From Macrostomum hystrix (Eukaryota > Animalia > Platyhelminthes): DNA of 64,000 nt. How positions within the stretch are numbered: position 1 is the first letter of the stretch; every line of letters begins with the position of its first letter. A program made the position numbers and the translations under genes. This document shows positions 1 through 62,346 of this stretch, in pieces. The notes beneath the pieces are model-generated. The model was not told where the DNA came from and ran no database searches. It saw only the letters and a list, made by a program, of their open reading frames with translations. Location: NCBI GenBank assembly GCA_950097015.1, contig CATNEN010000038.1, positions 15,872,001 through 15,936,000 of the forward strand. The letters are read 5' to 3'.

Positions 1-348
1 CACTGCGCCTCAGTGCGGCCTTGCCAGGTCTTCAAAATGTATCATCATGTCACCCGAATGTGCCTGCATCATCTCTGACTTCGGTGGTCTTCTAAACTTA
101 TCTAGACGGACTGCTGGACCTTCAAGGGCTACAACAGGTGTAACTATGCCACTATGGACGCCCTGACGCGAATTAGTCCGATTTCACTGATCAAGCTTAA
201 ACATTAGGCGCAGCTCAACCACAGGACAACCTCGCCTAGTCTGTCAACCAACCATATCACCACCCAACGCTGCTAGCATTCAGGTGCTGCTAAAAAATTT
301 CAGGGGGAACTGCAGTTTGTCTAAAGAAGCCATCGAGGCTCATTGTTG

Positions 349-3300
349 TCACCCGCGCCGACTCGCCATAATCTGGCGGATCCAGTCCACGTAGGCGCTG
401 ATGCGCATGAAATTAGCCGGATAGAGCTCCGGATTGGCCCCGGCTGCTGCGGATGAAGCGATGCCAGCCAGGTAAGGCACGCCCTTGTACTCGCAGCGAA
501 GGCCACCGCCGCTGTCACCCTGCAAATTATATTGGCTATTAGAAATTTAACTTAAATATATATAGTGCCTCAGATGAAAAAGGGTTAGAATATTGCACTT
601 CCCGGTCAAATTGGTCCTTGGTTTTGCCGTCGCTTGAGATATTCTATGACCAAATCTGCTGATTTTGTTTCACTCAATTTAATCCTGGGGGCACCTATTT
701 CGCGCATGTATTTGAAAATCGCATTATTTTGTAAGTCGCAAGCATGCGTGATTCTGACAGTATAGCGCCAGCTTTATAACTGCTGATGGAGAATAAGCGA
801 GGCGTGAGCATGCTGAATGGCTCCTAGGCCTTCCAGCTGAATGTCATTCGATTTACGTTGGATGCATCGCTCGCTGAAGATCCTATTTTATAAGTCCCTG
901 CTCGCATACCAAAGTACTCGTAAAACAGAGGACTACTTAGGTTAGGAATTCATCGAGGAGAACTGTATTTGATAATATTGTTCCTTATTATGTTACCATT
1001 CCAGTTTTTTCATGAGTTGCAATCAATTGATCAGTGCTCCGCTTCTTTTAAACAAGCGATTTTAATCAAGGAATGTCACAATGCAGCGGGGGGTAGGTGG
1101 CAGAGCGGTAGACGCGTTTACCTCACGCACTAATGTCCCTAAGCTCGAATCCGCAACGAGGCCACAATAATTTGGGGCGGAGAGAGGGCTTTGGGGCTTT
1201 TCGTGAAATTTACGACCTTGAGGGCCAACCTCTAAGGTATAGTAACACTACCTGACGATGAGAAAATCAGGCCTGCATACAGTATATCTGTGTGTGTGTG
1301 CTCAGGAGTCAGCGAAATGGACAGAATCGAATCCTCGCTGGCTACTCATTTCGAGTCACCAAACAATTATTAGCAAAGCTGCAATTGCAACGCGTCGAAA
1401 TTTTACTAAGCAGAAATTTCACAACGTCGAGCGACACTCTTTCTTAAGATCGAAATTTCGAAACGTCGAAATTACTCGACGTCGAAATTTATTATTGTCG
1501 AAAATTTTATCCAGCCATTTCACAACACAAAAAAATTTTAATGCTGTTATTCTTAACAATGCCGAATTATCGTAGGCCTTAAATATAACACTAATGGGTA
1601 GCATTTGTATGAGTTATTTATCTGACATAACATGGCATGATGAGTGCTAACTGCTTTCCTGCAACGGAAGTTTCGGATCTGAATTCGGAGTTATGAAATT
1701 TCAACGTTAGGATATTTCGGGTTTTTGAAGTTTCCTTGATTAAAAGTAAAAGTACCTCTCGCGGTACAGTTTTTATGGCTGTCTTTAGGTGCGCCAATTT
1801 TTGATGCATCATAACTCACCGGACAAACGGTTGTCCTGTTGGCCTGAACGCACAGGTTTTTGTGCCACAACAGCGGATCACCATCGCGGTAGGTGCTGGT
1901 ACACAGGCTCAGCGGCTTCACCGTGAAGTTGGCCATCAGGAGTTTCTCGCGAACTCCGCCGCTAGGCCGGGTGCAGCCCCAGCCGGAGTAGAAGCAGAGC
2001 TCACCTGGCGCTGGGCCGTTGGCTGCCACCACCTCGCTGGGCGGCAGCTCGATCGGTCCCGCGTAACTGATCTTATCGTAGCGAATGTCCGACGTCTCAA
2101 TAACTGCTACGTCGTGTAGAATGCTGTCTGTATAAATAGGTAAGTCGGTATAAAAGGTGAAGCTGTAGTAATGCGTCCGACTATTAAGCCATGGTTCATG
2201 AGCCTGATGGTTGGAAATTCAAGGAAGTTGTACAATCCCGTGTGCGCATGTGCTCAGGGTTCAGCGGAACGAACAGAATCGCATTCTCGCTCGCTGCATG
2301 GTCAACCAGTATCTAAAATAAGTGCGTCAAAGCCTACAGATCCTTACGAAAAATAGTTACATTTTAATTTCGATTCCGCGGTGAGGCCACAGTAGTTTGT
2401 GGCGCAGCCACAGAGAAAAGGCTTGAATGTGTGTCGTGCAATTTGCGCCCTTGAGGGCCAATCTCCAAGGCAGAGTGAATAAAGTGTACACTGCTTGACG
2501 ATGAGAAAGTGTGAGAGTATGCCTGCGTACGGTATCTTTTTGCGTGTGTGCTCAGGAGTCAGCGGAATGGGCAGAATTGCCTCCTCGCTGGCTGCGGGTC
2601 TAGTGTCACTAAATGATGTGCCACTGCCCGCAGCCCTCCTGCAATTATTATATTTCTTATTTTATTAAGCAGCACAGATTAACTTCATCGAATATTCCCA
2701 GTAGCAACTCAAGCGATCGATATACGTCGAACTCGTGTTTAAGAAATCAAGACTTACCTTTGTTGTATCCAGGATGAATATGTATTTTTTTAAAATGAGC
2801 GTGATGGGCGACATTGCTAGCAATGTTACTTCCAGTTAACCTGAAGTTTAAAGTATTTTTATTTACTTTTTAATGAAATTTTAGGGTGGTACGCAGACTT
2901 TTTAGTTTGGTGCTCAAACTTACTTTGCTGCCTTGCGTGCAAACCAGCTTTTCATTCGGTCATACACTGACGGCTTGCGATTCACGCTGTGCATGTACAC
3001 CCTCCAGTTGCTGGAGGCTATCCTGTGGCAAGGTTTAGGTTATGCGCAGAGCTAATTTGTGGAGAGCCCATGCAGCTATCGCGCGGTGCATCTAAAGGTT
3101 GCCTACGGCTTTTCAGCCCATGGACTGGTGGGACGTCACCCCGCTTATCGATTCATAATATTTTGAGCCAGAATATGAGACACTGGAGACAAAAAGTTGG
3201 GATCGAATTCTAAGGAACTTGGCAAATACTCGCAGCCCGTTCGAAGACTATTAGTTTTGCAGACTATTGGCGATTTCGGTAATTTCGCTGTATACGATTC

Positions 3301-3690
3301 ACGATAAATTCTGCCGCGATGCACTCACAGGTTGCCGTCAGAGTCCAACAAGCAATGAGCCGCCGTGATGACATGATTTAGATCTAGTAGGCTCGCACCG
3401 CAGTGCACTTGCTTCTGAGTGAAAAATCTCAGCGTCATGAAGCCGACCTTCTTAGGCTCGCTAACATAGTAGGAGCCTGTGATAGTGACGGAGAAGGGAA
3501 ACAGTCGTTGCTTCTGCTCCTTGCTCACTTCGTCAGCGTTGCCGATGATTCTACGAACTCGACTCAGTTGTCGTCCGCTGTCAGCTTCCGTTCGCAGGGT
3601 TGCCGCATCACAGCAAGTTGATAAGGATAAGATCGACACTGACGTCAGCACAATGAGTGCCAACAATATTTCGCTTATATTAACAGCCAT
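349..3690 (-). CDS. Secreted S1 (chymotrypsin-fold) serine protease, 5 exons (approx. 3690-3329, 2986-2924, 2840-2758, 2129-1820, 519-349)
   Basis: Signal peptide, RVRR|IIG activation site, CGASL and TAAHC (His), IHPGYN, HDVAVI (Asp), SGWG, GDSGG (Ser). Exons join in phase at GT-AG sites. Confidence 0.92.
1088..1350 (+). mobile_element. SINE-like interspersed repeat (family B) with tRNA-like head
   Basis: A-box-like GGTGGCAGAGCGG and B-box-like GCTCGAATCC; body shared with 2366-2600 and, inverted, with 46965-47220. Confidence 0.65.
2366..2600 (+). mobile_element. SINE family B copy, 5'-truncated
   Basis: Colinear with 1145-1345 (CCTTGAGGGCCAA, GACGATGAGAAA, TGTGCTCAGGAGTCAGCG). Confidence 0.65.
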
Positions 3691-4539
3691 TTTTGGATTT
3701 TCTCCAGCAAGATATTTCGCTAAGGCTCGCTTTAGCTTTAAAAAATTTGCCTAACAAGTCCACCATGGCTCTGTATTACATGCAGAACTTTTTATAAAGA
3801 TTAGAGTTTATAATTTAAACAGCGGTCAGGTTACAGTTAGTATCAGCTACGATCCAAGATTACAGATTGGACTGTAAAAATGGAACTGCATATCTTGGGT
3901 AACACAAGTTTACAATGCAAATTGTCAGTTTATCTACATGAGAACAACGACTTTTAAGTTTTCGAAAAGCTCAGCTCGTAAATTCAGAGTAAGACCCGGG
4001 CAAAGCGAGCGATATTTGTCTAGATTTAGTGATATTACAAATAGACAGTAGAAGACTTAGTAGACAGTAAATAGACTGACTGTCTACTGAAAGTTTAAGA
4101 AACTTTTACGACTAAAATGTTGCCCTCTCATAACTAGCACGATTACTATATGGATATAAATGCATAAGGGTATTTCAGCGAACGAGTCAATGATGTGACT
4201 ATAAACTATTTATACGCTAGCAGCGTGCTCAACACAACAGATTTTCATCATTGTCTGACAGAAGTAGTTTAGGCAAAAACATTGATGAAAAATTTAATTA
4301 CAGGTAGAAATATAGAATTATAAAAAAGTTCACTAGAGCTATGCCACGTGCACAAAAAGCTGGTCGAGCTTAATCAACGTGCCCCTCACCAAGACCAGAG
4401 TATCCTGCATGTATCTTACTACAGGTCATAAGGATAATCTGAATCTCATGAAGCCATAAACAACCTGCCCAGTTAAAATTAGCCTATAGAAGACGCACTT
4501 ATAACTCACAACGATACTCTCCTATAATTGTATATTAAT

Positions 4540-5400
4540 ATACCATAAATACTACATTAACGCCTAACGGCGCCCTCTGATTTTCCATTAACGCCCCTTT
4601 AAGCATGGGTATCAATTTTTATTGTACAATAGACGTTTTTGCCCAAGCTATACTTTCAGAGACAGAGACGGGGTGTGGGGCAGAGCCCCCACTTCGGGGT
4701 GCCATAGACATTGTAGCCTCAGTAAACCATTCCTATAGGCCGATGCCTTTTTGCGGGCGGTTAATGTTTAATGGTTATTAACTGCCCGGAAGAAAATTTC
4801 CGAGCATTAATTCATCTATGGCCATTAACGGGCAAGACTTTTCGCCCGCCGGGCAAAAATTTCATGGTACACTATCCATTATAAGGCTTCAGCAACGTAT
4901 TATGGTATAAACGATCACTCAGCGATAATGGCATGTCTATGGCACAAACTGCGCCAATCCGCCATGAGCCAGAAGCTGACAAAATTTGGACGCTTATATT
5001 TGTTTCTTTAATTATCAATTAAAGTATTTTACCAACTGGTAAAAGCATTATAAGGCTTCAGGCCATAGACAAATCAACTCCCCCTATAACGCCGTTGCTT
5101 GTCGACCGACAGCCGCCAGATAGCGTTATAGGGGGAATTGATTTGTCTATGGCCTGAAGCCTTATAATGCTTTTACCGGTTGGCTGCCTCGCAGTTAATG
5201 GCGATTACGATCTCGGCGCTACGCGCCTCGATCGACCGCCATTAACTTGCTCGGCACCCAACCGGTAAAGTTCCATTAACGCCCTTAAGCATACGCGTGT
5301 TGAAACGAGGTTGAAACTAACGGCAGCCCGCCCTCTACTGTTGTCTATGGTCGAATTCCATAGATATGCACAGCGGGCGGGGCCATGAAACGAGTTTCAC
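4540..5400. mobile_element. Non-autonomous Crypton-related element with large internal palindromes
   Basis: 4570-4710 matches the left end of the Crypton at about 16215-16345 (GGGTATCAATTTTT...AGACGTTTTTGCCCAAGCTATACTTTCAGAG). Repeated CCATAGAC/GTCTATGG motifs. About 60-bp inverted repeat at 5031-5092/5123-5183. Confidence 0.6.
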
Positions 5401-5714
5401 GCATGCTAACTACAATATACCAATACTGACAGGCTGCAGAGGGCTGAAACGATGTAAAAAGTTGAGGTGCGGAGCTAATAAATCAAACATTGAGGCGTGT
5501 AATATCTAAATGAAAGATTTAATTACAGAATAGTGAACACATTCGGGCTTCATTTTGCAGAGAATCATACGCTAATTCAATGACTTAGATGACACGTTTA
5601 CTGATACTCAAAAACTTAAACAGCTATAAAAGCAAAGCACTCTAAAAATGCATGAAGCTTTCCGTGGACAATAAAATAGTATAGGCACAAGCTCTTGAGC
5701 GAGAATGAAACTAT

Positions 5715-6776
5715 TTAATGACTTTCGTAAAAAAACGGGTTGTTTTTCAAGTCTAACATAGATTTCATTAATTCTCCTAGATTGGGCTTTAGCAACTCTA
5801 CAGGAGGTGAGAAGTATTGCACATTGAGCGACTTGGCACGTTTCAATGCCGCCAGTCTCAATTGAGGCAAACGATTCAAACGATGAGGAAATCCTGGCAA
5901 AACGTAAGTCTTATTAGGATCGTATGCTTTCAATGGTTTCGCGAAGTCGGGAACAATGTACACCAAGTTATCTAGCCTGGGTAAAAATGACGTGATGCAC
6001 CCATCAGTGAAGTCGTAAGGCAGAATCTCGTTCATTAAGCACAACATGCCTTTTTCGCGACTCTCTTTATTGAAAAATCCTCCGGGGAAGAATATTTTGA
6101 ATAAAGAGGCCAGCATGGCTGACCTGCCTAGTCCAGGACCGCACATGTGCAAACGAAACGGCTGCCTAGACTCGCGATTAAAGCGTATAACGTGGCGCAT
6201 TTCTTGACTGAATGAGGATAGCACCTCAGCCGACATGGATGAACTAAAGGCCAGGTCTATAATCATGGTATCACAGAACGGGAACTCCAGTGCTTGTCTT
6301 GCCTTATAAAAATGTTTGGTGTCCTCAACAGACCACAGCGGAACGGCACTCGGTATCTTTTCAGTGAAGGTCAGGGGATCTTTCTGTGAAATATGCTGAA
6401 GACGATAGATCCTGAGCAGTGCGCGATTCAATGACCTGTGGTCTGGACATGCCAGCAGTTCCAGCCATTGTTTGTCAAATATTTTATCGCAGTCCGGTAG
6501 GAAGCTAGCAACTGATGGCTCCGATTTTTTCAGTTCTAACTGTAAGCGCAGAAGATCAAACCGGGTTCTCTCAGTCATTGTCAAATTCAACAATACATCC
6601 TTGGCGCTTCGATAGCCTTCATAATCAGGAATAACAAATGGAGAAGAGAAGTCCATCTGCAGATCATAAGGCTGCGGCGGATCCAGCTTCCACGTGTTTT
6701 TAGACGCTAAGAGCAGTTTAAAAGGCCTGCTAATCGAAGTGAAACGATACAGTCGACCTGCCGTTAATGAAATCAT
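5715..6776 (-). CDS. TRMT10C: TRMT10C/MRPP1-like paralogue 1 (highly diverged SPOUT methyltransferase)
   Basis: 353-aa ORF colinear with the neighbouring paralogues (WLELL, DLAF..M, FNRES..PF.LH.C, YDPNKTY); SAM-loop motifs are degenerate. Confidence 0.75.
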   Translation of the reverse strand: MISLTAGRLYRFTSISRPFKLLLASKNTWKLDPPQPYDLQMDFSSPFVIPDYEGYRSAKDVLLNLTMTERTRFDLLRLQLELKKSEPSVASFLPDCDKIFDKQWLELLACPDHRSLNRALLRIYRLQHISQKDPLTFTEKIPSAVPLWSVEDTKHFYKARQALEFPFCDTMIIDLAFSSSMSAEVLSSFSQEMRHVIRFNRESRQPFRLHMCGPGLGRSAMLASLFKIFFPGGFFNKESREKGMLCLMNEILPYDFTDGCITSFLPRLDNLVYIVPDFAKPLKAYDPNKTYVLPGFPHRLNRLPQLRLAALKRAKSLNVQYFSPPVELLKPNLGELMKSMLDLKNNPFFYESH

Positions 6777-7469
6777 CTCGCAAATAGTGCTGAAATGAGA
6801 CAGTAAATAACGAAACCTTTTTACAGAAACGTTACGTTTCTAATCAATGGCATAACTTGTAATAATCTGTCTGTTTAATATAGTATGGAAATATATTACA
6901 TTGCTATGAACTTAAAATACCTAAATACTTACATACTAGGGCAAAGGAAATAAGTATGTAGCTTACTCACATATTAGCTGACAGAAGTTGATGAGTTAGC
7001 TAACAAAAGTAGTTCAAAAACTATAAATAAAATTAACGCCAAACTCTTGGTAATTTACGAGTAAATACGGATATTTAAATGCGTAATTTCAAGTATGCGA
7101 ATCCGTAATAGTCTACTCTTACAAAATACACAATTTTGACTGAGCTGTAAAATTTTTAAATAAGGAAATAAACGGGTATAGTACACAATATAATAATTAA
7201 ATATATCAGATAAATGTTTATTCCAAGCACTACATAGTACTGCACAGAATGAAAAAAAACTATGTTCACGCTAGTATTTAATACAGAAACAGTTAATAAA
7301 GTCAAACAAATGCCACTAACATAAGAACGAGAATTAAAAAAAAGAAACAAGCGCAGATGTGCGCTTTTTTAGAACTAACGAACGGGTTTATTTTAATGCA
7401 TGCATTAAGGGGTGTTTCAGTAACACTGAAATTTCAGTGAGTTCTTAATTACTTTCTCGGGCTTAAAAA

Positions 7470-8654
7470 CTAGGTCTGATGCCCATAAAGCAAGGAATGC
7501 AAAGCGATCGGCGACTTAATGGCACTCTGTTGCCGCGTCATGCGCTTTGGCAGGTGCTTACTTGCCTCTGTCCAAATAGCTGATAGGCGAACCTCTTGAA
7601 TAATGCTGAAGAGTATATTCAAAGGTAATGCCTTGGGCGCGATACGTCTGGGAATACGAAGACACTGAAGGCCCTGCATTGCAGCCTTAGACTTAGCGTC
7701 GCGGGAACTTTTTCCAGTAATATCCACAACACCAGAAATGATGTAGATTTTAGTTGGATCGTAATCCTGCATTTCCTGCCTGGCATGCAGTGTGAGGTAC
7801 ACAAGCTCATTAGTAGGAAACATTGTCGTGTAGCAGGATTCGCTAAACATGTATGGCAAGCGATCTTCAAACGAGTCAATGGTTAAATCGAAACGGCCCA
7901 CTTCATTCACTTGAGTGGTATTAAGCTGTCGATTCATAATATAGTACTGCTGGGTGTTGCGCTTGAGGTTACAAAAGTGCAACTGAAACGGCTCAGCCGA
8001 CTCATGATTTAAATGGAAGATTATCTTTAACTGACGGACCATGTCCGACAAAGTTTTTGTCGTCATCTGCTTGTGAAAAGACATGTCAAAAACCAGTGTC
8101 GGACAGAATGGATACTCGTGTATCATTCGTAGATCGTAGAACGCTTGAAATTCAGGTTTTTCCAGTCTGGTGTGAATGTAGTCCCAGGAAGGCTTTCCCC
8201 AGTCGCCGGAACTCCCCTTTCCGGCCTTTAGTGAAGCAGAGCCGGAAAACTGTTTTGTAGCCAAATAGCTCAACGTATTTCCCAGAGCCAGGTTCGAATT
8301 GCAGGACAGCAACTGAACCCATTCGAAGCTGTTGATCTTGTCTTTGTCTGGAACGCGCAACTTTCCGAGCGCCACCTGGATGTCAATCTGTTCGCCAATG
8401 TCACGCATGCGCTTCTTATCAAGGTCGCTCAGATTAGCTAGTACATCATCTGGCGACTTGGTGTGGTCATTCAGGTAGACCAGAGGCTCACGCTCGCCAT
8501 TCTCATCGGTGCGAACCCACGAATAGTCCAGGTTCAGATCGTAATCAGGAAAGTTTCTTTTGCTTCTAGAAGCAAACCCTGACACGAAATCTCGATTTGG
8601 GAGCAACCTCACTGGCAATTGCCAGGAAAGCAGAACTTTGTTGAGTAGAGACAG
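7470..8654 (-). CDS. TRMT10C: TRMT10C/MRPP1-like paralogue 2; coding exon starts at a splice acceptor
   Basis: LVFDMSF, QL, PFQLHFCNL, LVYLT, YDPTKIYIISGVVD, W.EA..H.P.R motifs of the Trm10 family; TTTTCAG acceptor before codon CTG at 8654. Confidence 0.85.
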   Translation of the reverse strand: MSLLNKVLLSWQLPVRLLPNRDFVSGFASRSKRNFPDYDLNLDYSWVRTDENGEREPLVYLNDHTKSPDDVLANLSDLDKKRMRDIGEQIDIQVALGKLRVPDKDKINSFEWVQLLSCNSNLALGNTLSYLATKQFSGSASLKAGKGSSGDWGKPSWDYIHTRLEKPEFQAFYDLRMIHEYPFCPTLVFDMSFHKQMTTKTLSDMVRQLKIIFHLNHESAEPFQLHFCNLKRNTQQYYIMNRQLNTTQVNEVGRFDLTIDSFEDRLPYMFSESCYTTMFPTNELVYLTLHARQEMQDYDPTKIYIISGVVDITGKSSRDAKSKAAMQGLQCLRIPRRIAPKALPLNILFSIIQEVRLSAIWTEASKHLPKRMTRQQSAIKSPIALHSLLYGHQT

Positions 8655-9265
8655 CTGAAAATTTATATTAGGCCAAGGGTAATGACTCCGTAAACACACA
8701 TTCAATACAATCGCATTTAGCTTACATGGCAAAATATTGCCCGAAATCCTTCGATGTAAGCGGTCAATGCTGGTTCAGGTATTGATAACACGTACAATTC
8801 AGTATTTACTCTCTAGTCAGGAGAGCGCTAATTACGATTTAGATGCGTAATGTAAATAAATGTTTGTAGATAATAACAATTCTAATTGAATATCCAGAAA
8901 AATATACTTGCTTCTGTTTATTACAACGACCACAACAAAAGCGAAATTATGATTAAAATCACCGTTCGCAGTGCAAAACAAAGAAATAATAGTACATCAG
9001 CACGGCAATGCACGTACAAAATATTTGCTAAGAAACAGCGTCCTAATGACGAGTAATACACAATGCACAGAAGTAGCCGAATTAAGCAAATGCGAGTTTT
9101 TATAGGGCCAATGAGAACTTCAGGTGGCTGCTTCAAAAAAGCAATCAACATTTGGTGTCCGTTTATAAGCAGCAGGTATACTCATAACTCAAATTTTCTG
9201 GAAAAGCTCACTCAGTCTGTAAGCCTTGAAGTGATTTCTGGACTAAAAAACTATTGACGACAACA

Positions 9266-10492
9266 TTAAGCCCGAAAAACGTTCTTATCGAATTTCGATG
9301 ACTTTTGTCCATACAACAAAGACGGTTCAGAGGTGGGTGACTTTGTTGTCTTCGGCTGCAGCATGCGCTTCGGCATGTGCTTCGTGGCCTCCATCCAAGA
9401 GCCCGATAGACGAACCTCCTGCATGATGTCGAAGAATATATTCAAAGGCAGCGACTTGCAGGCCACAGTTCGAGGAAGGCGAAGGCTACGAATGCCCTGC
9501 ACTGCGGCCTTGGACTTGGTGACGCCGACGCAGTTGCCGGAGAGGTCGACAAGGCCACCAATGATGTAGACCTTGGAGGGATCGTACTCCCGCATCTCCT
9601 GCTTCGCGTTCGGAGACATATAAATCAGATCCTTCGTAGGGAACAGACTCGTGTAGCAGTCTTCCGTGAACGAGTAGGGCCAGCAGTCTTCGAATGAGCT
9701 GGGACAATCTGAAGTAATTAAGTCCTTTGCTTGATTCTTCAGCTGCCTGTTCAATACGTAGTATTGCTGCGTGTTGCGCTTAAGATTGCAAAAGTGTAAT
9801 TGAAACGGTTCAGCGCACTCGCGATTCGACTGAAATATGTATTTCAATTGATTAGCCTGGTCCGCATGACATCGAGCATTCATGTCTTTGTCGAAAGACA
9901 TGTCAAACACCAGCGATGGACAGTACGGATACTCGTGAATTAGGCGGAGGTCGTAGAATTCCTGACATTCAGGCTTCTCTATCCTGGTGCGGATGAAGTC
10001 CCAGGAAGAATTTTCGGATGTCCTGGCTGAATTAGTTCTTTCTTGCTCTTTTTCGACCTTTTTCTTTAACTCACTCTCAGCTGAAAGCTGCTTGGTGGCT
10101 ATGTAGTAAAGCCTCTTACTCAAAGTGCCGTTTGAGTTACAGGACAGCAACTGTAGCCAATCATAATTTGTGATCTTGTCTTTGTCTGGAACGCGCAACT
10201 TTCCAAGCGCCACCTGGATGTCAATCTGTTCGCTAATGTCCCGCATGCGCTTCTTATCAAAGTCGCTCAGATTAGCTAGCACATCATCTGGCGACTTGGT
10301 GTGGTCATTCAGGTAGACCAGATGCTCACGTCTGCCATTTGGATCTCTGCGAACCCAAGAATAGTCCAGGTTCAGTTCGTAATCGGCTAGAAACTTTTTG
10401 CGCCTCAAACCAGTGCTGCTTGCCAACTCGCGGCAGGTGAGCAGCCGCACTGGCGACTGCCATCGACACAGGTATTTGTTGAGCAGGGACAA
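9266..10492 (-). CDS. TRMT10C: TRMT10C/MRPP1-like paralogue 3; starts at a splice acceptor
   Basis: Trm10 motifs YMSPNA and YIIGGLVD; Arg/Leu/Ser-rich transit-peptide-like N-terminus; TTTCAG|TTG acceptor at 10493. Confidence 0.88.
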   Translation of the reverse strand: MSLLNKYLCRWQSPVRLLTCRELASSTGLRRKKFLADYELNLDYSWVRRDPNGRREHLVYLNDHTKSPDDVLANLSDFDKKRMRDISEQIDIQVALGKLRVPDKDKITNYDWLQLLSCNSNGTLSKRLYYIATKQLSAESELKKKVEKEQERTNSARTSENSSWDFIRTRIEKPECQEFYDLRLIHEYPYCPSLVFDMSFDKDMNARCHADQANQLKYIFQSNRECAEPFQLHFCNLKRNTQQYYVLNRQLKNQAKDLITSDCPSSFEDCWPYSFTEDCYTSLFPTKDLIYMSPNAKQEMREYDPSKVYIIGGLVDLSGNCVGVTKSKAAVQGIRSLRLPRTVACKSLPLNIFFDIMQEVRLSGSWMEATKHMPKRMLQPKTTKSPTSEPSLLYGQKSSKFDKNVFRA

Positions 10493-11197
10493 CTGAAACG
10501 GAATTTGGAAAAAGTTTTCTTGTGAAAAGAAAACCAGAATGATGTCCGACTAAGTAGGTAGTAACAATTAATTTATGCTATCTATGAACTTAGTAATAAC
10601 CAAAATTGTGTGTCTTAAACTAACCTTAAAACACATATTTTTACTGGATGCAAATGTTTACTGGAACAGGAAGGAAACAGATTCCTACATTACATAATAA
10701 AATGCTACAAATTTGACATCACTGATTCAGCTCTAAATAAAAAATACATTTCAAGACACGAGAACCGCTTGTATGATACATAAGACAGATTGCTGATACG
10801 GTATATTTTTTTCTGCACTGCTTACTTGTGACAGTTTAATTAAAAAACTACGATTCCAGGTACAATGAAACATATCAAGTGGATGTAAATGACCAACAAA
10901 TTTTTACTTTCTACCTTTCTGATAGAGGGTCCATAGAGACAGCAAACGAGCTTGACAAACAAAGAACAGGTGTCACGAAACCTGTTATGCCCATTCTGCA
11001 CCATTTCACAAACATAAGAAAAATGATAAAAACAGAAAGCAATGATTGCTGCTCAATAAATAGACCAACAATTTAAATCCAATGTCATTAAAAATTTCTA
11101 CGTATATGATTACAAAACATACCTCAAAAATAGCAATTAACATAGCAGGGACAGTACTACAAGCTACAAGTAAAAATGCATAAACAAACTAGGTTGG

Positions 11198-12424
11198 CTA
11201 GCTGCTACTATTATTCTGCATCCAATGGGGTCGACGTAGATTCAATAATGATTGTTCAGAGGTCGGTGACTTTATTGTCTTCGGCTGCAGCATGCGCTTC
11301 GGCATGTGCTTCGTGGCCTCCATCCAAGAGCCCGATAGACGAACCTCCTGCATGATGTCGAAGAATATATTCAAAGGCAGCGACTTGCAGGCCACAGTTC
11401 GAGGAAGGCGAAAGCTGCGAACGCCCTGCACTGCGGCCTTGGACTTGGTGACGCCGACGCAGTTGCCGGAGAGGTCGACAAGGCCACCAATGATGTAGAC
11501 CTTGGAGGGATCGTACTCCCGCATCTCCTGCTTCGCGTTCGGAGACATATAAATCAGATCCTTCGTAGGGAACAGACTCGTGTAGCAGTCTTCCGTGAAC
11601 GAGTAGGGCCAGCAGTCTTCGAATGAGCTGGGACAATCTGAAGTAATTAAGTCCTTTGCTTGATTCTTCAGCTGCCTGTTCAATACGTAGTATTGCTGCG
11701 TGTTGCGCTTAAGATTGCAAAAGTGTAATTGAAACGGTTCAGCGCACTCGCGATTGGATTGAAGGATGTCCTTTAGTTGACTAGCCAAGTCTGACAAGCT
11801 TTTATTGTTCATCGCCTTTTCAAATGACATGTCGAATACCAGTGACGGTGAAAATGGACACTCATGAATGAATCGAAGATCATAGAATGCTTTAAATTCG
11901 CTCCTTACTTTTTTCGTGTGAATATAATTCCAACAGGACTGCCCCTCCTCATCGTCTTGAGTGCTCGCCTGGTCCAGTTCAAGTTCGGCTTTCTTTTTTA
12001 ACTCGCTTGCGATTGAAAGCTGCTTGGTGGCTATGTAGTAAAGCCTCTTACTCAAAGTGCCCTTTGAGTTACAGGACAGCAACTGTAGCCAATCATAATT
12101 TGTGATCTTGTCTTTGTCTGGAACGCGCAACTTTCCAAGCGCCACCTGGATGTCAATCTGTTCGCTAATGTCCCGCATGCGCTTCTTATCAAAGTCGCTC
12201 AGATTAGCTAGCACATCATCTGGCGACTTGGTGTGGTCATTCAGGTAGACCAGATGCTCACGTCTGCCATTTGGATCTCTGCGAACCCAAGAATAGTCCA
12301 GGTTCAGTTCGTAATCGGCTAGAAACTTTTTGCGCCTCGAACCAGTGCTGCTTGCCAACTCGCGGCAGGTGAGCAGCCGCACTGGCGACTGCCATCGACA
12401 CAGGTATTTGTTGAGCAGGGACAA
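11198..12424 (-). CDS. TRMT10C: TRMT10C/MRPP1-like paralogue 4; starts at a splice acceptor
   Basis: Near-identical to paralogue 3 except for a central block and the C-terminal tail; TTTCAG|TTG acceptor at 12425. Confidence 0.88.
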   Translation of the reverse strand: MSLLNKYLCRWQSPVRLLTCRELASSTGSRRKKFLADYELNLDYSWVRRDPNGRREHLVYLNDHTKSPDDVLANLSDFDKKRMRDISEQIDIQVALGKLRVPDKDKITNYDWLQLLSCNSKGTLSKRLYYIATKQLSIASELKKKAELELDQASTQDDEEGQSCWNYIHTKKVRSEFKAFYDLRFIHECPFSPSLVFDMSFEKAMNNKSLSDLASQLKDILQSNRECAEPFQLHFCNLKRNTQQYYVLNRQLKNQAKDLITSDCPSSFEDCWPYSFTEDCYTSLFPTKDLIYMSPNAKQEMREYDPSKVYIIGGLVDLSGNCVGVTKSKAAVQGVRSFRLPRTVACKSLPLNIFFDIMQEVRLSGSWMEATKHMPKRMLQPKTIKSPTSEQSLLNLRRPHWMQNNSSS

Positions 12425-12571
12425 CTGAAATATAAAGCATGTGAGTTATTAAAGTTGTTAAAATGTTTGGATCATAAAGGATACGATTCTGACAATTCAA
12501 CAACCCCGCTTGTCACGTTGCCATTTTCATCAGTAATATTTATCATTAAATATAGTTCGTATATAAGTTAC

Positions 12572-12671
12572 CATACCTTGAGCTACTCTAGATCAAACCA
12601 GTGCAAGAAATCCACACCCAACATATGATTACATGTTTTCTAGCGGATGGAACACCTCCAGATAAGAAAAC
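12572..12671 (-). other. Candidate 5' exon ending in ATG|GTAACT, possible initiator Met for the TRMT10C copies
   Basis: TCTTGCAG acceptor at 12672; ATG (12574-12572) is immediately followed by a GT donor, in phase 0 with the acceptors at 12424, 10492 and 8654. Confidence 0.45.
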
Positions 12672-13748
12672 CTGCAAGACGGAATCTATCTACGAGTCGT
12701 ACGAGCGTAATTGGCTAGAATAACGTTTATAGACACTAATGAGTTGCGAAAGAGAAGATAAGAAAAGTCGTAACTTATGTTTGCTCAGACAATTTCAACA
12801 ACACATTATACTTCAACTTTAATTTGAATGCAGCAGTCACAAACTATAAATTAAATACTCGTAGCAATATAAATTGAGAACGGCAGTTTACACAGAAGAC
12901 ATCGTAAAGAAACTATAAAAGACGTAAAAAGACAATAAATAAAAATTCGCTGCTTAATCTAATTGGCTTTCAGTGTGAAATGTAAGCAAAAACTGACTAA
13001 AATCAATTACAATTGTACTGATACCAATGTGATTAAATGCGAAAATAATATAAAGCAACAAGATAGGTGCAAATTAATATGCTAACATGCAATTCATTTA
13101 GATGAGTAAATACTAAACAGGTTAAGCTAATTTAATTTACAATTCGAACGCCTAATGCAGCCTTTTGTGCACCGTAGCAAATAAACTTTAGAATGAAAAA
13201 TCCTGAAATGAAAATTCCGTTAGAATCCTAACAAAATAGAAGTTTCATTCGACATTAAACAGTGAAAAGATAAAAATGCGATTAAAATATATCAGACGCA
13301 ATGCAGAGGCGACAGCTTACAGAAATAAATACAGTTTTATCGTTCACATGTAAAGACAATAAAAAACGAAATATTCAATTTAGCTTTCTTTTATTTCATT
13401 TTTTCGTAAAAGTTACAGGCATTTAGCATATTGCTTAGAACTTCAGACATCCGTTTGGGAGGTCAGGAGTTCGAATCGTATCCCAAGGAAGACAATTTGT
13501 ATCCTCAAGCAACTGGGCACTACTGTAATTTCAATCTCTATTCTTTCATCTTATATTTGAATTTCCTAAAGATAAGATTCACATGCAGCTTAGCTTTATC
13601 AGAAACTATTAGCAAATAGATTTTTTTGCGTCAGATAAACTAGCAATAATATCTAACCGCGGTGCATCCACAACAATGTAACTCGTGCGTACCTTGATAG
13701 TTAGGTACGCCAATGAAAAAAAAATCGATATATTAATAGCGCAGTCAG

Positions 13749-16700
13749 TCAGTCGAACAGATAGCCTCTACAGTTGGCCGACTTGCATAGGCAACGCATT
13801 CTAGTTAGGCCGCTGTTGAGACTGGCGCCACCAAGGCTGCCGCTGATGCTCTCAGAGGTGTCATCGCCAGCTTGACCATCCGCTGCGGCACTTATCGCGC
13901 CTGTCATCTGGTAGTCGAATGTCAGCTCGGCTCCCTTCGGAATTGGCTCCTTGGCAAACAGAGCTAGCAAAGGCAGGTCTTTGTCAATGCACTGCGTGTA
14001 GACGCATCTGGTTACAAGGTTGGGATTGCACGAGTGATTTAAAAAGTGCGCCACATTGCCGAAATTGCGAGCGTCCACCGAATAGACGGCCTCGCCATCC
14101 AGGTCCAAGTCGAACAGATAGGTCTGGGCCTGCCTATCGTAGATCATGCCGCGGGTCTCGGCCTCCCGGCTAGTCACCACTTCGCCAACGTATTCAACAA
14201 CGAAGGAGCCGCGTGGTATGCGCTGAAGTGTGCGCACACCCCAGCCCCGGTTCGGTGTCCGATAGATGGCCAAGCCGAATTTGCGGCCCTGCTGAACTAC
14301 ACGGAACGGACAGTCTGGACCGCATTTGCACAGAGAGTTACACTCGTGAATCGGATAATTGGCGTGAACATCCGGCAAGCGACCCTGCCTGGTAAGATGG
14401 TTTTTGTTTAGTTATATTAAACACGGGGCTTCGGCTTTGTCTCTAAATGGGTTGTAGCCTTGTCGATAGAACATGGGAAACACGACTTGAAGGTCAGGAG
14501 TTCGATTCACGACTCCATTGGAACAATGTGTTATTTAGCAAGCCACTGTTTAACTATAAAGCGCCAGCATCAGATGGAGTAGTTTTTGGTGGGTAAATTG
14601 GTGTGGCGCCCACCAGTCCATGGACTGAAAAGCAGTGCGTAGCATTTAAATGCTCCACTCAATAGCTGTGGTTGTGCTATCGGCTGCCCATCCGACCCAA
14701 GGGGGTCAGGTGTAATGAATTATAGCTACAATTTAATTTGTGTCAAACAACTAATAAAAAGCATTCTCGTGAAGTCAAGATAACAAGACAAAGCCACGTC
14801 TGTGGACAAGGCTGCAATTGTGCGATAATCTTCTGAATCCTAATCTTAATTCGTGAGCTCTTAAGTGGTCAGAGCTTTCGACATCGAACAATGAGGACTG
14901 GAACAAAACTTTTGACACAAAACTTTCTAGCTGTAAAATCCCCCAAAGTTATAAATTTTTTAAATACTGTTTCGACCTCTAGCCCGACTGTGTTTAGGCG
15001 CGATATCTGTTTTTATACTGTGAATTCGAAGTTGAATTATCTAAAAATCTAAAAAACGCAATTATACCGCAATTGAATAAAACAGACACAGTAAACCATA
15101 AAATCTTTTTTATATATGAGTAGCTAATGAACAATAGGAAACAATGCACAATAGCATCTTTAAGCAACAACTGGGAGTGCGACTAGCAATCAACTAACCT
15201 GGTGTAGGGCACGTGCTTATCATTGTGAATGTGATAAGTCACACACGAGTGCCGCTCTTCGTAGCAGTCTGTGCAGCTGCACCCGAACACCGGGTCATTA
15301 GGAATGGACACTTCTGGGCCAGGCACGCGCTCAGTGACAAACGTGAAGGCCAACGGCGGGCCCTCCAAATCGATCTTATTCTCAACTACAATTCGCGCCT
15401 GAGGCTCTTTCTCATTTAGCATCGCCTCCCAGGCTTTTAGCTCGGCTTGTACTTTTACCGCCCGACTGCGCTTCGAAGTGCCAATCATGCGGCTCTCGCT
15501 AGGCAGCTTGCGCCTATTGCCGAAGCTTTGCAACACGCGCTTAGAAAGCGTCTCAGCCAGCACGGCCTCGAAACGCTCAGGCGTTAGGCCGTCAAAGTTG
15601 ATGCAATCAAGCAGCTGGATAACCCTGGCCTTGCTGCGCTCAGCAGACTCGGCCGAGTCGGAGGAATCCGACGGACTGCTGCGCTTCCTACTTTTATTAC
15701 TGATAAAGTTCTTGTACTCGGCTAGCAACTTGCGACAATTAGAGAGATCTGTCTCCGGCTCCCAGGTGCAACACTCCATTGGCCAGCCGCGCCACTTTAT
15801 TAAATAGTACATCTTCTGCTCGGCTTTATCCCAGTCGTGATCCTCGATGCTTTCAACCTCGTACTCGGCGTCATCGTATGTCACCAGCGACTGGTTGATT
15901 ACTAAGAGAGAAATAAAGGAAACGGTGATTGTTAGCGTTTAAATGTATTCATTGTATTGTATAAAAAGTACATTGCATACTAAACAGGTCATGTGACAGG
16001 TCATAGATTGTCAACATTTAAACAGGGCCAATTAAAAAAATTATTTTATAATATAACTTATGATGCCAGAAAATATATCAAACTTTTTATACTTCTTTGT
16101 TGATATTAGTTTTAGGAATAAGGCTATATTTTTATCTTACATTACTAGGCTCCAGAGTTTTTTATAATATACCATTAATTACCCATGCTTAATTATATAT
16201 TATAATAAGCACCATTAGGCGCCCGAGGATTTTTCATTGACGCCCGCAAAGCTTGGGTATCAATTTTTTTGTACCATAGACGTTTTTGCCCAAGCTATAC
16301 TTTCAGAGTCAGACGGGGTGTGGGGGCTAAGCCCCCACTTCGTGGTGTGGGGGTGAAGCCCCACCCACTACCATAGACTATTTTACTAGAAAGTTAAATT
16401 GTACACTGAGCCTTGTTTCTCTCTCCTTTCCACCACTCAGCGAACCTTTATTCTATCTACAGTATCTCTCTCTCATTTCTTTCTCTCTCTCTTGGTGCGT
16501 GATAAGCTATGCCATAGACTACAACTACACGAAGTCTGAACAAGTTGAGGAGGGAGGGAAAGGAAAACTAAGGCTAGCTCAGAAATTTCTTTCCTTCAAA
16601 CTTCCACTGAAGCATGATCAACTATGACGGAATAGTGGAATGCGAGATTGTGGGCTTGTCCACTGATGAATTGCGCTTCGTCACTGATGAATCGGTCAAC

Positions 16701-19682
16701 TGCTCTGGAGATACTGTGATATCTCAATTCACTGGACTCGTGACTCTCGACGCAAGCTTCGTCGAGCAGTCTATGCTGGGATTGTCAGATTATCCGGAGT
16801 TAAGAGAGAGCGACATACAAGAGATTTCGAAATTGGAGAATGATTGCACTGTGCGATCTACTGAGAAGCAGACCAGGATCTACTCTGAGAAGGTGAAGGC
16901 TTTTCTAGCTGAGCGAGGTTTGTCAACTGACCTCGAGAGCATGCCGCCAAGATATGTGTGTCACTATCTCCGTTTGTTTTTCTCTACTCTCAAGAAGCCC
17001 AATGGCACTGCTTACAGTTGTAGCACACTTCTGTGCATAAGGGCTGCAATTCATTGTTTCCTACTGGAAAAGTGAGGTATGCCATTGGAAATCATTGGAA
17101 ATCAATATTCATTGGAAATCCAGATTTTTTTGAGCTGGATAAGACCTTCAAAGCTGCCATAACATACTCACTGAAGCAACCAATGTCTGTTGTTGACAGT
17201 GAGGCTGGATATCCGGCAATAGACAGTGAGGACATGTCTAAGCTGCACACATACTTCACCAGAGCAGATCCAAAGAGGCTCCAGTATGAGGTGCTGTTTC
17301 TCATCGTGGTCCACTTTGGATTTAGAGGTCAGGAGTGGACCCCAGCTTTGATGAAAAATGATGTTATAGTCATACATGCACAACACCTGGCCGACCCGGC
17401 CGAACCGGCCAGGTGAAACGAGGGCCAAGCAAGGTAAGTCGCAAAAACCAATCAACCAAGCACAAAAAAAATCAAAGGGGGACCAAGGGACAAAAAAGGA
17501 AGGCGTGAAGAAGAGGAAAAAGGGGAGAGAAAATTAGAGCAAATGAGAGCAAACTAAGTCGTAAATAGAGCAATGAAACGAACTAAGTCACAACTGCATG
17601 AGAGCAAACTAAGTTGTAAATAGAGCAAAAACTAAGTCGCACAGCCGGCTAAGATTTGGGAGGTTGCACATGTATGGTTATAGTAAAGCGACGAGACAGA
17701 CATGTTGAATATTTCAATTTAGTGAAGGAGAAGGAGAAGAATGTTTCCGCCAAGAGTGCCAGCACCAGGAAGGAAATTGGTATCTTTCTGGTGAGCAATA
17801 AGGCTATATGCCCCATTGAGGCATTCACTCTCTACATACATGCGCAACACCCGGCTGACCCAGCCGAACCGGCCAGGTGAAACAAGGGCCAAGCAAGGTA
17901 AGTCGCAAAAACCAATCGACCAAGCGCAAAAAAATCAAAGGGGGGACCAAGGGACAAAAAAGGAAGGCGTGAAGAAAAGGAAAAATGAGAGAAAAAGAGA
18001 GCAAATGAGAGCAAACTAAGTCGTAAATAGAGCAATGAAACGAACTAAGTCGCACATGAGAGCAAAAACTAAGTTGCACAGCTGGCTAAGATTTTGTTTT
18101 TGGGAGGTTGCGCATGTATGACTCTCTACCTAGAGAAGCTTCCTAGTGACAACCCCAACCTGTTCCCAAGACCAAGGGCCAACTGAGGGCCAACTGGACG
18201 GGCGGCAACTGGTTCTGCAAGGAGGTCTTGGGTAAGAACACGCTTGCAGGATTTATGAAGGTTCTCTCCCAGGAATCTGGTCTTGGTCAATCATACACAA
18301 ATCATTGCATTTGTGCGACTACAATCACTACTCTGTCGGAGCAAGGTTTCAGTGCGGAACAAATTCAGGTCGTCTCAGGGCACAAGAGACTGGAGAATGT
18401 GATCCGATACACCAAGCAAGTGTCAATGGATCAAAAGTGTCTACTGTCAACATCCATGACTTCTGGCTTGCACAGAAGCACCAGCATACTAGAAGAGACA
18501 ACTCCCGCTAAGCAAATCACTGCAGAGCAGGATAAGACATTGCAGGCTAGTGACATAGCAGCCAGAGAACCCACAATTGTCCTAGAGAAAAACGGGTAAA
18601 GTGTTCTATCTACTTGTAACGTGCTTTGAGCCATGACTGCGACATTGACAGCTTTGATTTACCAATTGTTTTTTACCAATTTACCATAGTACTGAAAGTA
18701 ACCAAAAGTTTGTAATTGTTATCATTGAATGCCTATATGTCTATCATTGTTTAACTCTGCTTTACAATGCACTGTTGTTTCATGATTTCTGTCTGGAAAA
18801 ATCAGGCAGATAATTACATTATTCACCCGCAATTTGTCGGCAGTTAATGATGTTTGCACCATAGAGTTGACTTTGACATATATTTATTGACAGCGGGTTT
18901 TAATGTAGTCTATGGTTAATTAGGCAGGATTAAGTGCCTAGAGGGCAAAAAGGTCATAGTACAATATATATTATCTAAATAAGGTTTAAACTATTTTTAT
19001 TGCTCAGCTTAAAGTATTTTGAACTTTACTGTTTGTACTACCAATATATGATTGCTCTCAGCCAATTGCCATGCTATAAAATAGTCACAGTAGTTATATC
19101 TGCATAGTATGGATATAAATTGCCTTTATAAAAAAAGCTAGGCTTAACTATCTGCAAATCTTCAAATTGCATCTAGTATATATTTCAGCCTTTAAAGTGA
19201 TGCAAATTGAGTACAATTCTAATGCTTAAATATACAATGCTTAAGTTTGGTGAAATAAAATGACATGCTTATTGCATAAATCAAATCAAAATTTGGAATC
19301 AAAAGGCTAACATTTTTAATAGAAACCAACCCAAGTATTAATAAATGTAACATAATTTACCACAAACTGCAGTTATAAAAACTATAAAAAGCTATAAACA
19401 AGGCTAGCTGTTAAAAATGCTAATTTTCTCTAGTAGGCCCTATAATCTGAAGTAGGCCTATAACTTAGTAAGCACTGTTGACAATATAAAAACAATTAAG
19501 TACTTACAATTCGAAAGAACATGAAGGGCCTGGTTGGATGTTAGTTTTTGGAGATGAAGTGCGACAAACTGTACCACATCATCACTTGCATATCTAAGTT
19601 TGTTAGAATTAAGAACACTTAAAATTGACGTTGGAGGAATGTTAAAAATTTTCACAGATGATGGGAAGATTTTGATGCTCAT
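13749..19682 (-). CDS. SUV39H1: SUV39H/Su(var)3-9 H3K9 methyltransferase; exons 19682-19508 (inferred), 15901-15199, 14388-13749
   Basis: Chromodomain (YEVE..YLIKWRGW...TWEP), pre-SET Cys cluster, SET (RGWGV, YLFDLD, FLNHSCNPN, ELTFDY), post-SET CLCKSANCRGYL. The first exon is joined only by phase-1 compatibility. Confidence 0.92.
14448..14545 (+). mobile_element. tRNA-derived SINE (family A), degenerate
   Basis: GGGTTGTAGCCT...GACTTGAAGGTCAGGAGTTCGATTC head shared with 33895-34015 and 46828-46905. Confidence 0.65.
17371..17676 (+). mobile_element. MITE with 14-bp TIR and 8-bp TSD (hAT- or P-like)
   Basis: TIR CATACATGCACAAC / GTTGCACATGTATG; TSD GTTATAGT at 17363-17370 and 17677-17684. Confidence 0.92.
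17835..18120 (+). mobile_element. Second copy of the same MITE
   Basis: Perfect TIR CATACATGCGCAAC; TSD ACTCTCTA at 17827-17834 and 18121-18128. Confidence 0.92.
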
Positions 19683-61755: not shown

Positions 61756-62346
61756 TTCTGAAAGATTTGAATGATTTCTAAAGCTGAGCAATGTGAATGA
61801 TATATGTAGAAATGATTATTGTTAGCTAGCAATGCTCTGAAGTATTTTGATCTAAAATATTTAATAAACTTTTATTTTGCTCTTACTTTTGCTTAATTTA
61901 TATAGATCAAAAAGTCACAAATTATACCAAATATACCAAATACTAACATAAATATGCATTCCTACATGACATTTTGAATAACCTTAACTGATACATGACA
62001 CATTACTATGTCACAATTAATTATAAATGGTCACATGACAACTCTGAGCCAATAATAGGGCCTAACATACTTGCTGTTGCAATCAATTGAAAAGGCCAAA
62101 ATTATTAAAAAACCTATAGAAAGTTCACTTTTATACAAATTAGCAGTAGGCCTAACTAACAGACTTAAGGGCCATATGTAGGCTTCAGTTAGCAAAATTA
62201 GTACTAATTTTATTAATTGGATGAATACAAGAGAAGTAAAAAATTCTTAGTAAAATTTTACATTTCTGAACCTGAATGTCTCAATGTCAAAGAGAAAGAA
62301 ATCAATCATAATGCTGCTTTCTTTTCTTGTCTGCTATACTATCAAG

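Follow-up and report, generated by a model that had tools for sequence, protein, structure and literature searches.

Organization of the Array

The 64,000-nt window of the Macrostomum hystrix genome analyzed here (GenBank assembly GCA_950097015.1, contig CATNEN010000038.1, positions 15,872,001 to 15,936,000; coordinates below are those of the window) contains four tandem, intronless TRMT10C/MRPP1-like genes, all on the minus strand and each preceded by a TTTCAG trans-splice acceptor. Copy 1 consists of an acceptor at 12425-12430, a coding exon of 408 codons plus stop at 11198-12424 (open reading frames, a Pfam match, and contigs without splice joints), and a 3′ UTR at 10788-11197 with an ATTAAA signal at 10840-10835 and contig ends at 10788-10810. 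Copy 2 has its acceptor at 10493-10498, its coding exon of 408 codons plus stop at 9266-10492, and its 3′ UTR at 8895-9265 (AATAAA at 8922-8917; contig ends at 8895-8911). In copy 3, the acceptor at 8655-8660 is followed by a coding exon of 394 codons plus stop at 7470-8654, which begins CTG TCT CTA CTC, and by a 3′ UTR at 7310-7469 (AATAAA at 7392-7387; contig ends at 7363 and 7310-7314). The exons of copies 2 and 3 were delimited by open reading frames, Pfam matches, and a frame scan, and none of the first three exons has an ATG start of its own. Copy 4 (5715-6789, 353 codons; sequence and frame scan) lies behind an acceptor at 6790-6795 and has a 13-nt 5′ UTR (6789-6777) and its own ATG at 6776-6774.

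Upstream of the array and on the same strand lies a SUV39-like gene (13749-15891) with matches to the Chromo, Pre-SET, and SET domains, whose AATAAA signal at 13395-13390 is located about 950 nt ahead of the copy 1 acceptor. A tRNA gene between these two genes was considered as a transcription barrier; ARAGORN predicted none in positions 1-20000, and the tRNA-like strings there are fragments. A search of the whole assembly for additional paralogues with a possible ATG returned only the four array copies and two distant Trm10-like loci.

Identity of the Encoded Proteins

Copies 1-3 carry a Trm10-type SPOUT methyltransferase domain, matching Pfam PF01746 (tRNA m1G methyltransferase) with E-values of 2e-12, 8e-12, and 1e-6 in searches that used the genomic ORFs, without a leader-encoded Met, as queries. 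The preliminary description of this DNA had assigned them to TRMT10C, and the assignment holds: among solved structures, human TRMT10C chains match best (E ~2e-17, query residues 87-379), whereas Trm10/TRMT10A chains reach E ~2e-10 and in the methyltransferase domain only. The copies thus resemble TRMT10C more closely than TRMT10A/B, their homology reaches into the TRMT10C-specific N-terminal domain (NTD), and the alignment to human TRMT10C spans the NTD connector helix, the adapter helix, and the SPOUT methyltransferase domain. A fish protein named TRMT10C is among the non-flatworm protein matches, all of which share the precomputed Pfam family PF27710; identity to vertebrate TRMT10C is about 25-31% (fish protein P0003). 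Equivalents of human Q226 and D314 (residues per PMC8437803) are present in copies 1-3, within SQL/NQL/RQL and GGLVD/SGVVD, respectively. A match to a PRORP domain elsewhere in the genome is weak (30 bits, exon-level, below the cut-off).

The first 35 residues of copies 1-3 contain 6-8 basic and 1 acidic residue. This MTS-like composition suggests mitochondrial targeting, and the earlier proposal of a plausible transit peptide stands in that compositional sense, with a count of 8 basic and 1 acidic among the first 35.

Copy 4 is a divergent paralogue with 27% identity to copy 3, to which it matches by BLASTP with an E-value of 1e-27; it has no Pfam match. It lacks the motif-II Asp (the D314 equivalent), with PGFPH at the site, and the conserved C-terminal helix.

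Missing Start Codons in Copies 1-3

On the minus strand, the acceptors read tatttcag|TTGTCCCTGCTCAACAAA in copy 1, cgtttcag|TTGTCCCTGCTCAACAAA in copy 2, and attttcag|CTGTCTCTACTCAACAAA in copy 3, with first exon bases at 12424, 10492, and 8654. As the preliminary description had stated, L-S-L-L-N-K follows directly from the acceptor in phase 0 in all three copies. Its claim that about the first 80 codons lack an in-frame ATG was also borne out: a scripted frame scan placed the first in-frame Met at codon 83 in each copy, and found no in-frame ATG in the 7, 19, and 40 codons that precede a stop upstream of copies 1, 2, and 3, respectively. That description had extended the absence of start codons to the array as a whole, which is correct for copies 1-3 but not for copy 4, with its own ATG.

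The acceptor, its phase, and the absence of an ATG are kept in copy 3 despite its divergence from copies 1 and 2, from which about 40% of nucleotides differ in the first 30 codons. The start architecture common to copies 1-3 reflects homology, not three chance events.

Spliced Leader at the Acceptors

All RNA data are contigs assembled from three public runs (X3, X4, and X5) of a single study with no recorded library type; such contigs give neither the trans-spliced fraction nor true 5′ ends, and rare forms are dropped. At all four acceptors, contigs continue into the terminal 21-24 nt of a spliced leader (SL), ...CTGCGAAGACTCAATTTATTGCATG: at 12425 (copy 1, run X4), 10493 (copy 2, runs X3 and X5), 8655 (copy 3, run X3), and 6790 (copy 4, all three runs). 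The loose contig tails read, as reverse complement, ...CTGCGAAGACTCAATTTATTGCAT followed by a genomic G; in copy 1, where 23 nt of the leader are joined at 12425, the last G of the leader coincides with genomic G 12425. With the leader AUG, copies 1-3 read M-L-S-L-L-N-K, and copy 1 reads M-LSLLNKYLCRWQSPVRLL.... The proposal that a spliced leader donates the AUG is supported at the level of RNA by in-frame leader tails at 12425, 10493, and 8655. A 19-nt degenerate junction pattern, used as a DNA-absence control, showed that the SL-exon junction string does not occur in the genomic DNA, and the contigs therefore derive from trans-spliced RNA.

At least 20 exact genomic copies of the leader represent SL RNA genes, in which the leader is followed by a GTAAGA donor and which carry an Sm-like AUAUUUUUAG and hairpins (z = -3.3). 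This leader has the same sequence as the 35-nt SL of Macrostomum lignano (PMC8629364), and the M. hystrix genome paper states that the SL probably contributes its final ATG as a start codon. An slORF, or SL-AUG-initiated flatworm mRNA, combines a leader with a terminal AUG, whose SL RNA genes contain a GU donor and an Sm site, the joining of this leader immediately 5′ of the ORF, and an in-frame leader AUG with no alternative AUG for the full-length frame. The first of these features was found in the genome and the second at 12425, 10493, and 8655; the third was found in copies 1-3 but not in copy 4. Since the ATG of copy 4 lies 13 nt past its acceptor, the leader AUG falls in a different frame in this gene, where it starts a uORF of 20 codons.

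Over the first 360 nt, a single base, in codon 29 (12338 in copy 1, 10406 in copy 2), distinguishes copies 1 and 2, and the assembler may have collapsed them. Their separate SL junctions are partly resolved: an X5 contig (10281-10493) covers the codon-29 difference with 0 mismatches to copy 2, and the X4 contig of copy 1 is absent from the contig table. An unspliced X4 contig (8455-8736) runs through the copy 3 acceptor.

Gene Conversion and the Central Cassette

Gene conversion has turned copies 1 and 2 into mosaics, each enclosing a central cassette of ancient divergence. In copy 1, the cassette comprises codons 138-223 (11756-12013) and has not been homogenized with its homologue in copy 2 (9827-10081), where synonymous differences have reached saturation; both were delimited by comparison of the copies. 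A contig at 11726-12043, i.e., the copy 1 cassette ± 30 nt, and another at 9797-10111, over the copy 2 cassette, occur in all three runs. The M. lignano orthologue (P0001) is equidistant from copies 1-3, with 63/63/63% identity in the N segment and 49/46/50% in the central segment, and this equidistance does not date the triplication relative to the M. lignano split.

A more elaborate interpretation, which we regard as speculative and rather unlikely, is that the array provides three co-expressed mitochondrial MRPP1 isoforms, with N- and C-terminal parts kept identical by conversion and start codons supplied by trans-splicing, that serve as functionally distinct RNase P/m1R9 scaffold variants beside a catalytically dead, uORF-damped copy 4. 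As part of the same interpretation, the cassette would stay anciently diverged under purifying selection, taking in the final part of the tRNA-lining connector helix, the loop and helix of the adapter, both docking on SDR5C1, and the beginning of the methyltransferase domain.

Probable Initiation at the Leader AUG and Alternative Explanations

Very probably, the array is SL trans-spliced and the leader AUG opens the full-length frame of copies 1-3. The pre-mRNA of each copy is trans-spliced at its TTTCAG acceptor, placing the 35-nt leader, with AUG at its end, directly before codon 2 of copies 1-3. Given an acceptor in phase 0 at that position, the leader AUG is the only AUG available to the full-length frame, and copies 1-3 would consequently depend on trans-splicing for a translatable mRNA. 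The resulting frame, M-LSLLNK..., would begin with a basic, nearly acid-free, presequence-like N-terminus. Ribosomes are expected to start at the leader AUG, and the products may be imported into mitochondria and act in RNase P or m1R9 methylation. The dN/dS values of 0.1-0.3 between copies indicate that they are functional genes.

The preliminary description had also considered one upstream promoter and a Met-only exon (12572-12671, minus strand) that is cis-spliced alternatively to the whole-protein exon of copy 1, 2, or 3. The sequence on which this idea was based does exist, with ATG at 12574-12572 and GTAACT at 12571-12566, and the three acceptors share phase 0, as it would require. However, contigs of X3, X4, and X5 show no splice joint in 6701-12700 and no coverage of the spacers 12501-12700, 10501-10700, and 6901-7300, the first of which includes the ATG|GTAACT; as contigs drop rare forms, this is an absence of support rather than proof of absence. 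Leader tails occupy every acceptor instead, separate poly(A) signals serve the individual copies, and contigs define a 3′ end for each, which makes the shared exon extremely improbable. A weaker ATG|GTGCAG (ATG at about 11004-11002) was rejected as well, being located inside the copy 1 3′ UTR and continuously covered by contigs at 10788-11304. The further suggestion that splicing selects which RNase P subunit variant is made found no support, given the separate acceptors and poly(A) signals. The same libraries contain contigs over the unique central part of each of copies 1 and 2, over copy 3, and over the beginning of copy 4; with all four genes expressed, there is no sign of splicing "choosing" a variant.

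Alternatively, the leader AUG might go unused, with translation starting at the TTG or CTG first codon, right after the acceptor, or at Met83 without a presequence, or with the transcripts not being productively translated. The context of the leader AUG is indeed weak (U at -3, U or C at +4), but a scanning ribosome would meet this in-frame AUG 5′ of, and before, the near-cognate codon. Moreover, purifying selection acts on the 82 codons that precede Met83 (dN/dS ~0.3 for copy 1 or 2 vs. copy 3, N segment), which align to the human TRMT10C NTD from about residue 87, and Cheng et al. (2006) are cited for the use of the SL AUG in Schistosoma mansoni. We therefore consider disuse of the leader AUG improbable, although less so than the shared exon. 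Compatible with initiation at the leader AUG, and in our judgment about an even chance, is an SL-resolved operon in which the four copies, possibly together with the SUV39-like gene, share a single promoter. The array shows adjacent same-strand genes, every one of them trans-spliced at the SL acceptor, including the downstream ones, and short intervals between each poly(A) site and the acceptor that follows (about 300, 245, and 520-570 nt), below the 1-kb operon criterion used for M. lignano (PMC8629364). The tag of the M. lignano orthologue, Mlig016274g10, may denote gene 10 of a transcriptional unit, in our reading of the naming. On the other hand, no contig bridges any spacer, which for contigs is compatible with rare precursors; the unspliced contig before copy 3 ends at 8736, with 8737-8894 uncovered, and a promoter of its own fits equally well. 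The gap of about 950 nt between the SUV39-like gene and copy 1 is borderline.

Comparison With Known Systems and Implications

Initiation at a spliced-leader AUG is a textbook mechanism for flatworms, known since 2006, and the TRMT10C array is a clean new example of it. Cheng et al. (2006) are cited as having identified more than 40 S. mansoni cDNAs that need the SL AUG. As in copies 1-3, the SL of these trematode genes has a terminal AUG, codon 2 follows the acceptor directly and in phase, and there is no usable AUG of the gene's own. The array differs in that the host is a free-living macrostomorph, in that translation from the leader AUG is deduced here, and in that three tandem paralogues would depend on it beside a fourth with its own AUG and an out-of-frame leader AUG. 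Human TRMT10C/MRPP1 (PDB 7ONU, 9EY0, and 8CBK; PMC8437803) shares with the array an intronless coding sequence and, with copies 1-3, the Q226 and D314 positions, but is present in one copy rather than three or four, and the start codon here would come from the SL. The SL-resolved operons of M. lignano (Ustyantsev and Berezikov, 2021; PMC8629364) likewise consist of same-strand, SL-trans-spliced neighbors that are separated by less than 1 kb and have a [T/C]TNCAG acceptor motif; their gap mode is about 100 nt, compared with 245-570 nt in the array, which is a candidate polycistron.

The RNA-level confirmation means that Macrostomum gene models can be complete without a genomic ATG. Annotation that demands an ATG would cut such genes back to Met83, with loss of the presequence, or flag them as "partial." The M. 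lignano orthologue is a case of the latter: it was deposited under that label and begins NAVLRGWQSPVRLL without a Met. The array also offers a compact natural contrast on why flatworm leaders keep a terminal AUG, since three paralogues need this AUG and the fourth must bypass it. In a duplicated family, the ATG-less architecture survives duplication, divergence, and gene conversion.

Gene Array and Identity

Four intronless open frames lie in tandem on the minus strand within 5715-12430, downstream of a SUV39-like gene (Chromo, Pre-SET and SET domains) on the same strand. Copies 1 to 3 (11198-12424, 9266-10492 and 7470-8654) match Pfam PF01746 (tRNA m1G methyltransferase), and their top solved relatives are human TRMT10C/MRPP1 chains (E ~2e-17; query residues 87-379, a span that takes in the TRMT10C-specific N-terminal domain), whereas Trm10/TRMT10A chains reach only E ~2e-10 and are confined to the catalytic domain. 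Copy 4 (5715-6776) gave no match in the Pfam search, and its BLASTP alignment to copy 3 (27% identity, E 1e-27) marks it, at the sequence level, as a clear divergent paralogue of the array. A six-frame search of the whole genome returned the four loci of the array, two distant Trm10-like loci and nothing else. Equivalents of Q226 and D314 are retained in copies 1-3. In copy 4, PGFPH stands in place of GGLVD, and both the motif-II Asp and a conserved C-terminal helix are missing; methyltransferase activity is therefore unlikely for this copy.

Missing Start Codons and Spliced-Leader Trans-Splicing

Inspection and a script both bear out the preliminary description, in which copies 1-3 open with L-S-L-L-N-K in phase 0 directly after TTTCAG (TTG/CTG TCC/TCT CTG/CTA CTC AAC AAA) and lack an in-frame ATG over about the first 80 codons. 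The earliest in-frame Met is codon 83 in all three. Upstream of the acceptors the frame stays open for 7, 19 and 40 codons (copies 1, 2 and 3), among which the script found no ATG. The absence of a start codon is thus confirmed. Initiation at Met83 would lose 82 conserved codons (dN/dS ~0.3 vs copy 3). Counting a Met, the first 35 residues include 6-8 basic and one acidic, a presequence-like composition. The deposited sequence of P0001, the M. lignano orthologue (59% identical), is labelled "partial" and begins NAVLRGWQSPVRLL, without Met, which suggests that the ATG-less state is common to the genus Macrostomum.

Two sources of an initiator had been proposed: an ATG exon shared by the copies, or the AUG of a spliced leader (SL). 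We mapped Logan contigs from three runs of one 2020 study (X3, X4, X5) and run X1 of another on 6701-12700; the evidence is thus assembled contigs, not reads. About 65% of the region's words are present in the three runs, roughly its exonic share, and the contigs cover nothing but the four genes with their 3' UTRs. On the minus strand, contigs end with unmatched tails at 12425 (copy 1; X4), 10493 (copy 2; X3, X5), 8655 (copy 3; X3) and 6790 (copy 4; X3, X4, X5), all junctions coming from one study and X1 adding none. The tails are 21-24 letters long, their reverse complement is ...CTGCGAAGACTCAATTTATTGCAT, and the base next after the tail, the G of the genomic acceptor AG, doubles as the last G of the leader. 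Because leader tails sit at the acceptors and share this G, the mature mRNAs carry the leader AUG in frame: ...UUGCAUG is joined to UUGUCCCUGCUC in copies 1 and 2 and to CUGUCUCUACUC in copy 3, and the leader AUG with the first exon reads AUG-UUG-UCC-CUG-CUC-AAC-AAA (M-L-S-L-L-N-K). A degenerate 19-nt junction string does not occur in the genome; the contigs therefore derive from trans-spliced RNA, not DNA. That the tails stop at 21-24 nt presumably reflects branching of the assembler graph inside a leader common to thousands of mRNAs.

The motifs cited for a shared exon, ATG/GTAACT (12574-12566) and a weak ATG/GTGCAG (near 11003), are present in the sequence. Contig depth is nevertheless zero in bins 12501-12700, which hold the candidate exon, as it is in the spacer bins 10501-10700 and 6901-7300, and no cis-intron joint occurs anywhere in 6701-12700, which leaves the shared exon unsupported. 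The earlier conclusion that splicing would choose between variants likewise finds no support. The leader tails at the acceptors of copies 1-3 support the SL alternative: trans-splicing would supply their initiator AUG, with ribosomes likely starting there, and without the leader no AUG would be able to open the conserved frame.

Copies 1 and 2 differ by one base over their first 360 nt, and in any one run the assembly may have retained just one of the two versions. An X5 contig (10281-10493) matches copy 2 with zero mismatches across that base, so that the junctions of the two copies are told apart only in part, at copy 2. Both copies are certainly expressed, since contigs from each of the three runs cover the central segment unique to each copy (11726-12043 and 9797-10111). 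Contigs of X1, which carries another organism label (2024 study), are ~99% identical to parts of copies 1/2 and their UTRs (8866-9118, 9862-10129, 11254-11582), which suggests that the array is also present in a very closely related organism or a different strain.

In copy 4, unlike copies 1-3, the acceptor cag (6792-6790) is separated by 13 nt (6789-6777) from an ATG that the copy itself carries (6776). The leader AUG is here out of frame and opens a 20-codon uORF (MHYLRDDFINGRSTVSFHFD, then a stop) overlapping the true AUG; translation of copy 4 must therefore rely on leaky scanning, in which ribosomes would pass the SL AUG, whose context is weak (U at -3).

The Spliced Leader and Its Genes

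Over all 35 nt the leader agrees with the M. lignano SL given in PMC8629364, and CTGCGAAGACTCAATTTATTGCATG followed by GT occurs in the genome, without a mismatch, at least 20 times. At the SL RNA gene on contig C1, ...ACGGTCTCTTACTGCGAAGACTCAATTTATTGCATG precedes GTAAGA and then an Sm-like AUAUUUUUAG flanked by hairpins; this gene is solitary, with no U1 within 3 kb. The majority of SL RNA genes belong to tandem arrays that repeat every ~11,645 bp (C15; also C17, C42). At L003:1501-2002, among the 11.6-kb units of C15, the SL RNA gene has a same-strand neighbour ~300 nt away, a gene for U1 snRNA (Rfam RF00003, 151.7 bits).

Possible Operon Organization and Probable Gene Conversion

Poly(A) signals lie near contig ends on the minus strand (ATTAAA 10840, copy 1; AATAAA 8922, copy 2; AATAAA 7392, copy 3), and the distances from 3' end to next acceptor (~300, 245 and 520-570 nt) satisfy the <1-kb gap used for operon calling in M. 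lignano (PMC8629364). None of the contigs mapped on 6701-12700 bridges an inter-copy gap, and the sole unspliced one, upstream of copy 3, ends at 8736. We consider the case for transcription as an operon evenly balanced.

Copies 1 and 2 are virtually identical over codons 1-137 and 224-386 (dS 0 and 0.01), whereas in codons 138-223 (11756-12013 and 9827-10081) 52 of 56 synonymous sites differ, which is saturation, with dN 0.31; this cassette is as divergent between them as either is from copy 3. Contig breaks 30 nt to either side of the cassette mark the same boundaries independently. The identical tract begins within 6 nt of the trans-splice acceptor, the outrons being unrelated, and its other end, near codon 386, precedes the stop codon. 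Copy 3 is 96% identical to copies 1/2 over codons 61-90 and 86% over codons 91-120. On these alignments, the simplest reading is that copies 1 and 2 are old duplicates whose flanks would have been homogenised by gene conversion. In human numbering (9EY0_F chain index + 69, verified on Q226 and D314) the cassette corresponds to residues ~147-233. It runs from the last part of the connector helix through the adapter loop (175-182) and the adapter helix that docks on SDR5C1 (183-202) into the first part of the MTase domain (PMC8437803).

Neighbouring Sequence

In the first coding exon of the SUV39-like gene (15870-15910, minus) the chromodomain is likewise preceded by no in-frame ATG, the ORF being listed from GTG 15884. 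A candidate acceptor, CAACCAG/TCG (15891/15890), is in phase, and with an SL AUG the frame would read M-S-L-V-T-Y-D-D..., which makes this gene a possible further SL-AUG case. Two tRNA-like fragments, one in the SUV39H 3' region (13430-13510) and one in a SUV39H intron (14460-14530), carry CGAACTCCTGACCT on the minus strand, the reverse complement of the T-arm-like GGTCAGGAGTTCG; ARAGORN called no tRNA at either, and they are probably SINE-like remnants. Farther along, 54001-62000 shows strong strand asymmetry over 8 kb (GC skew +0.25 to +0.53, AT skew up to +0.28).

Significance of Probable Leader-Supplied Initiation

Flatworm SL AUGs are established as initiators. As quoted in PMC9851317, Cheng et al. 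(2006) put the in-frame share of S. mansoni trans-spliced transcripts at 28% and gave more than 40 cDNAs as requiring the SL AUG, and the M. hystrix genome paper describes the start ATG as probably lying within the SL (PMC10468722). SL-AUG initiation is thus already known as a mechanism, to which copies 1-3 would add a new case.
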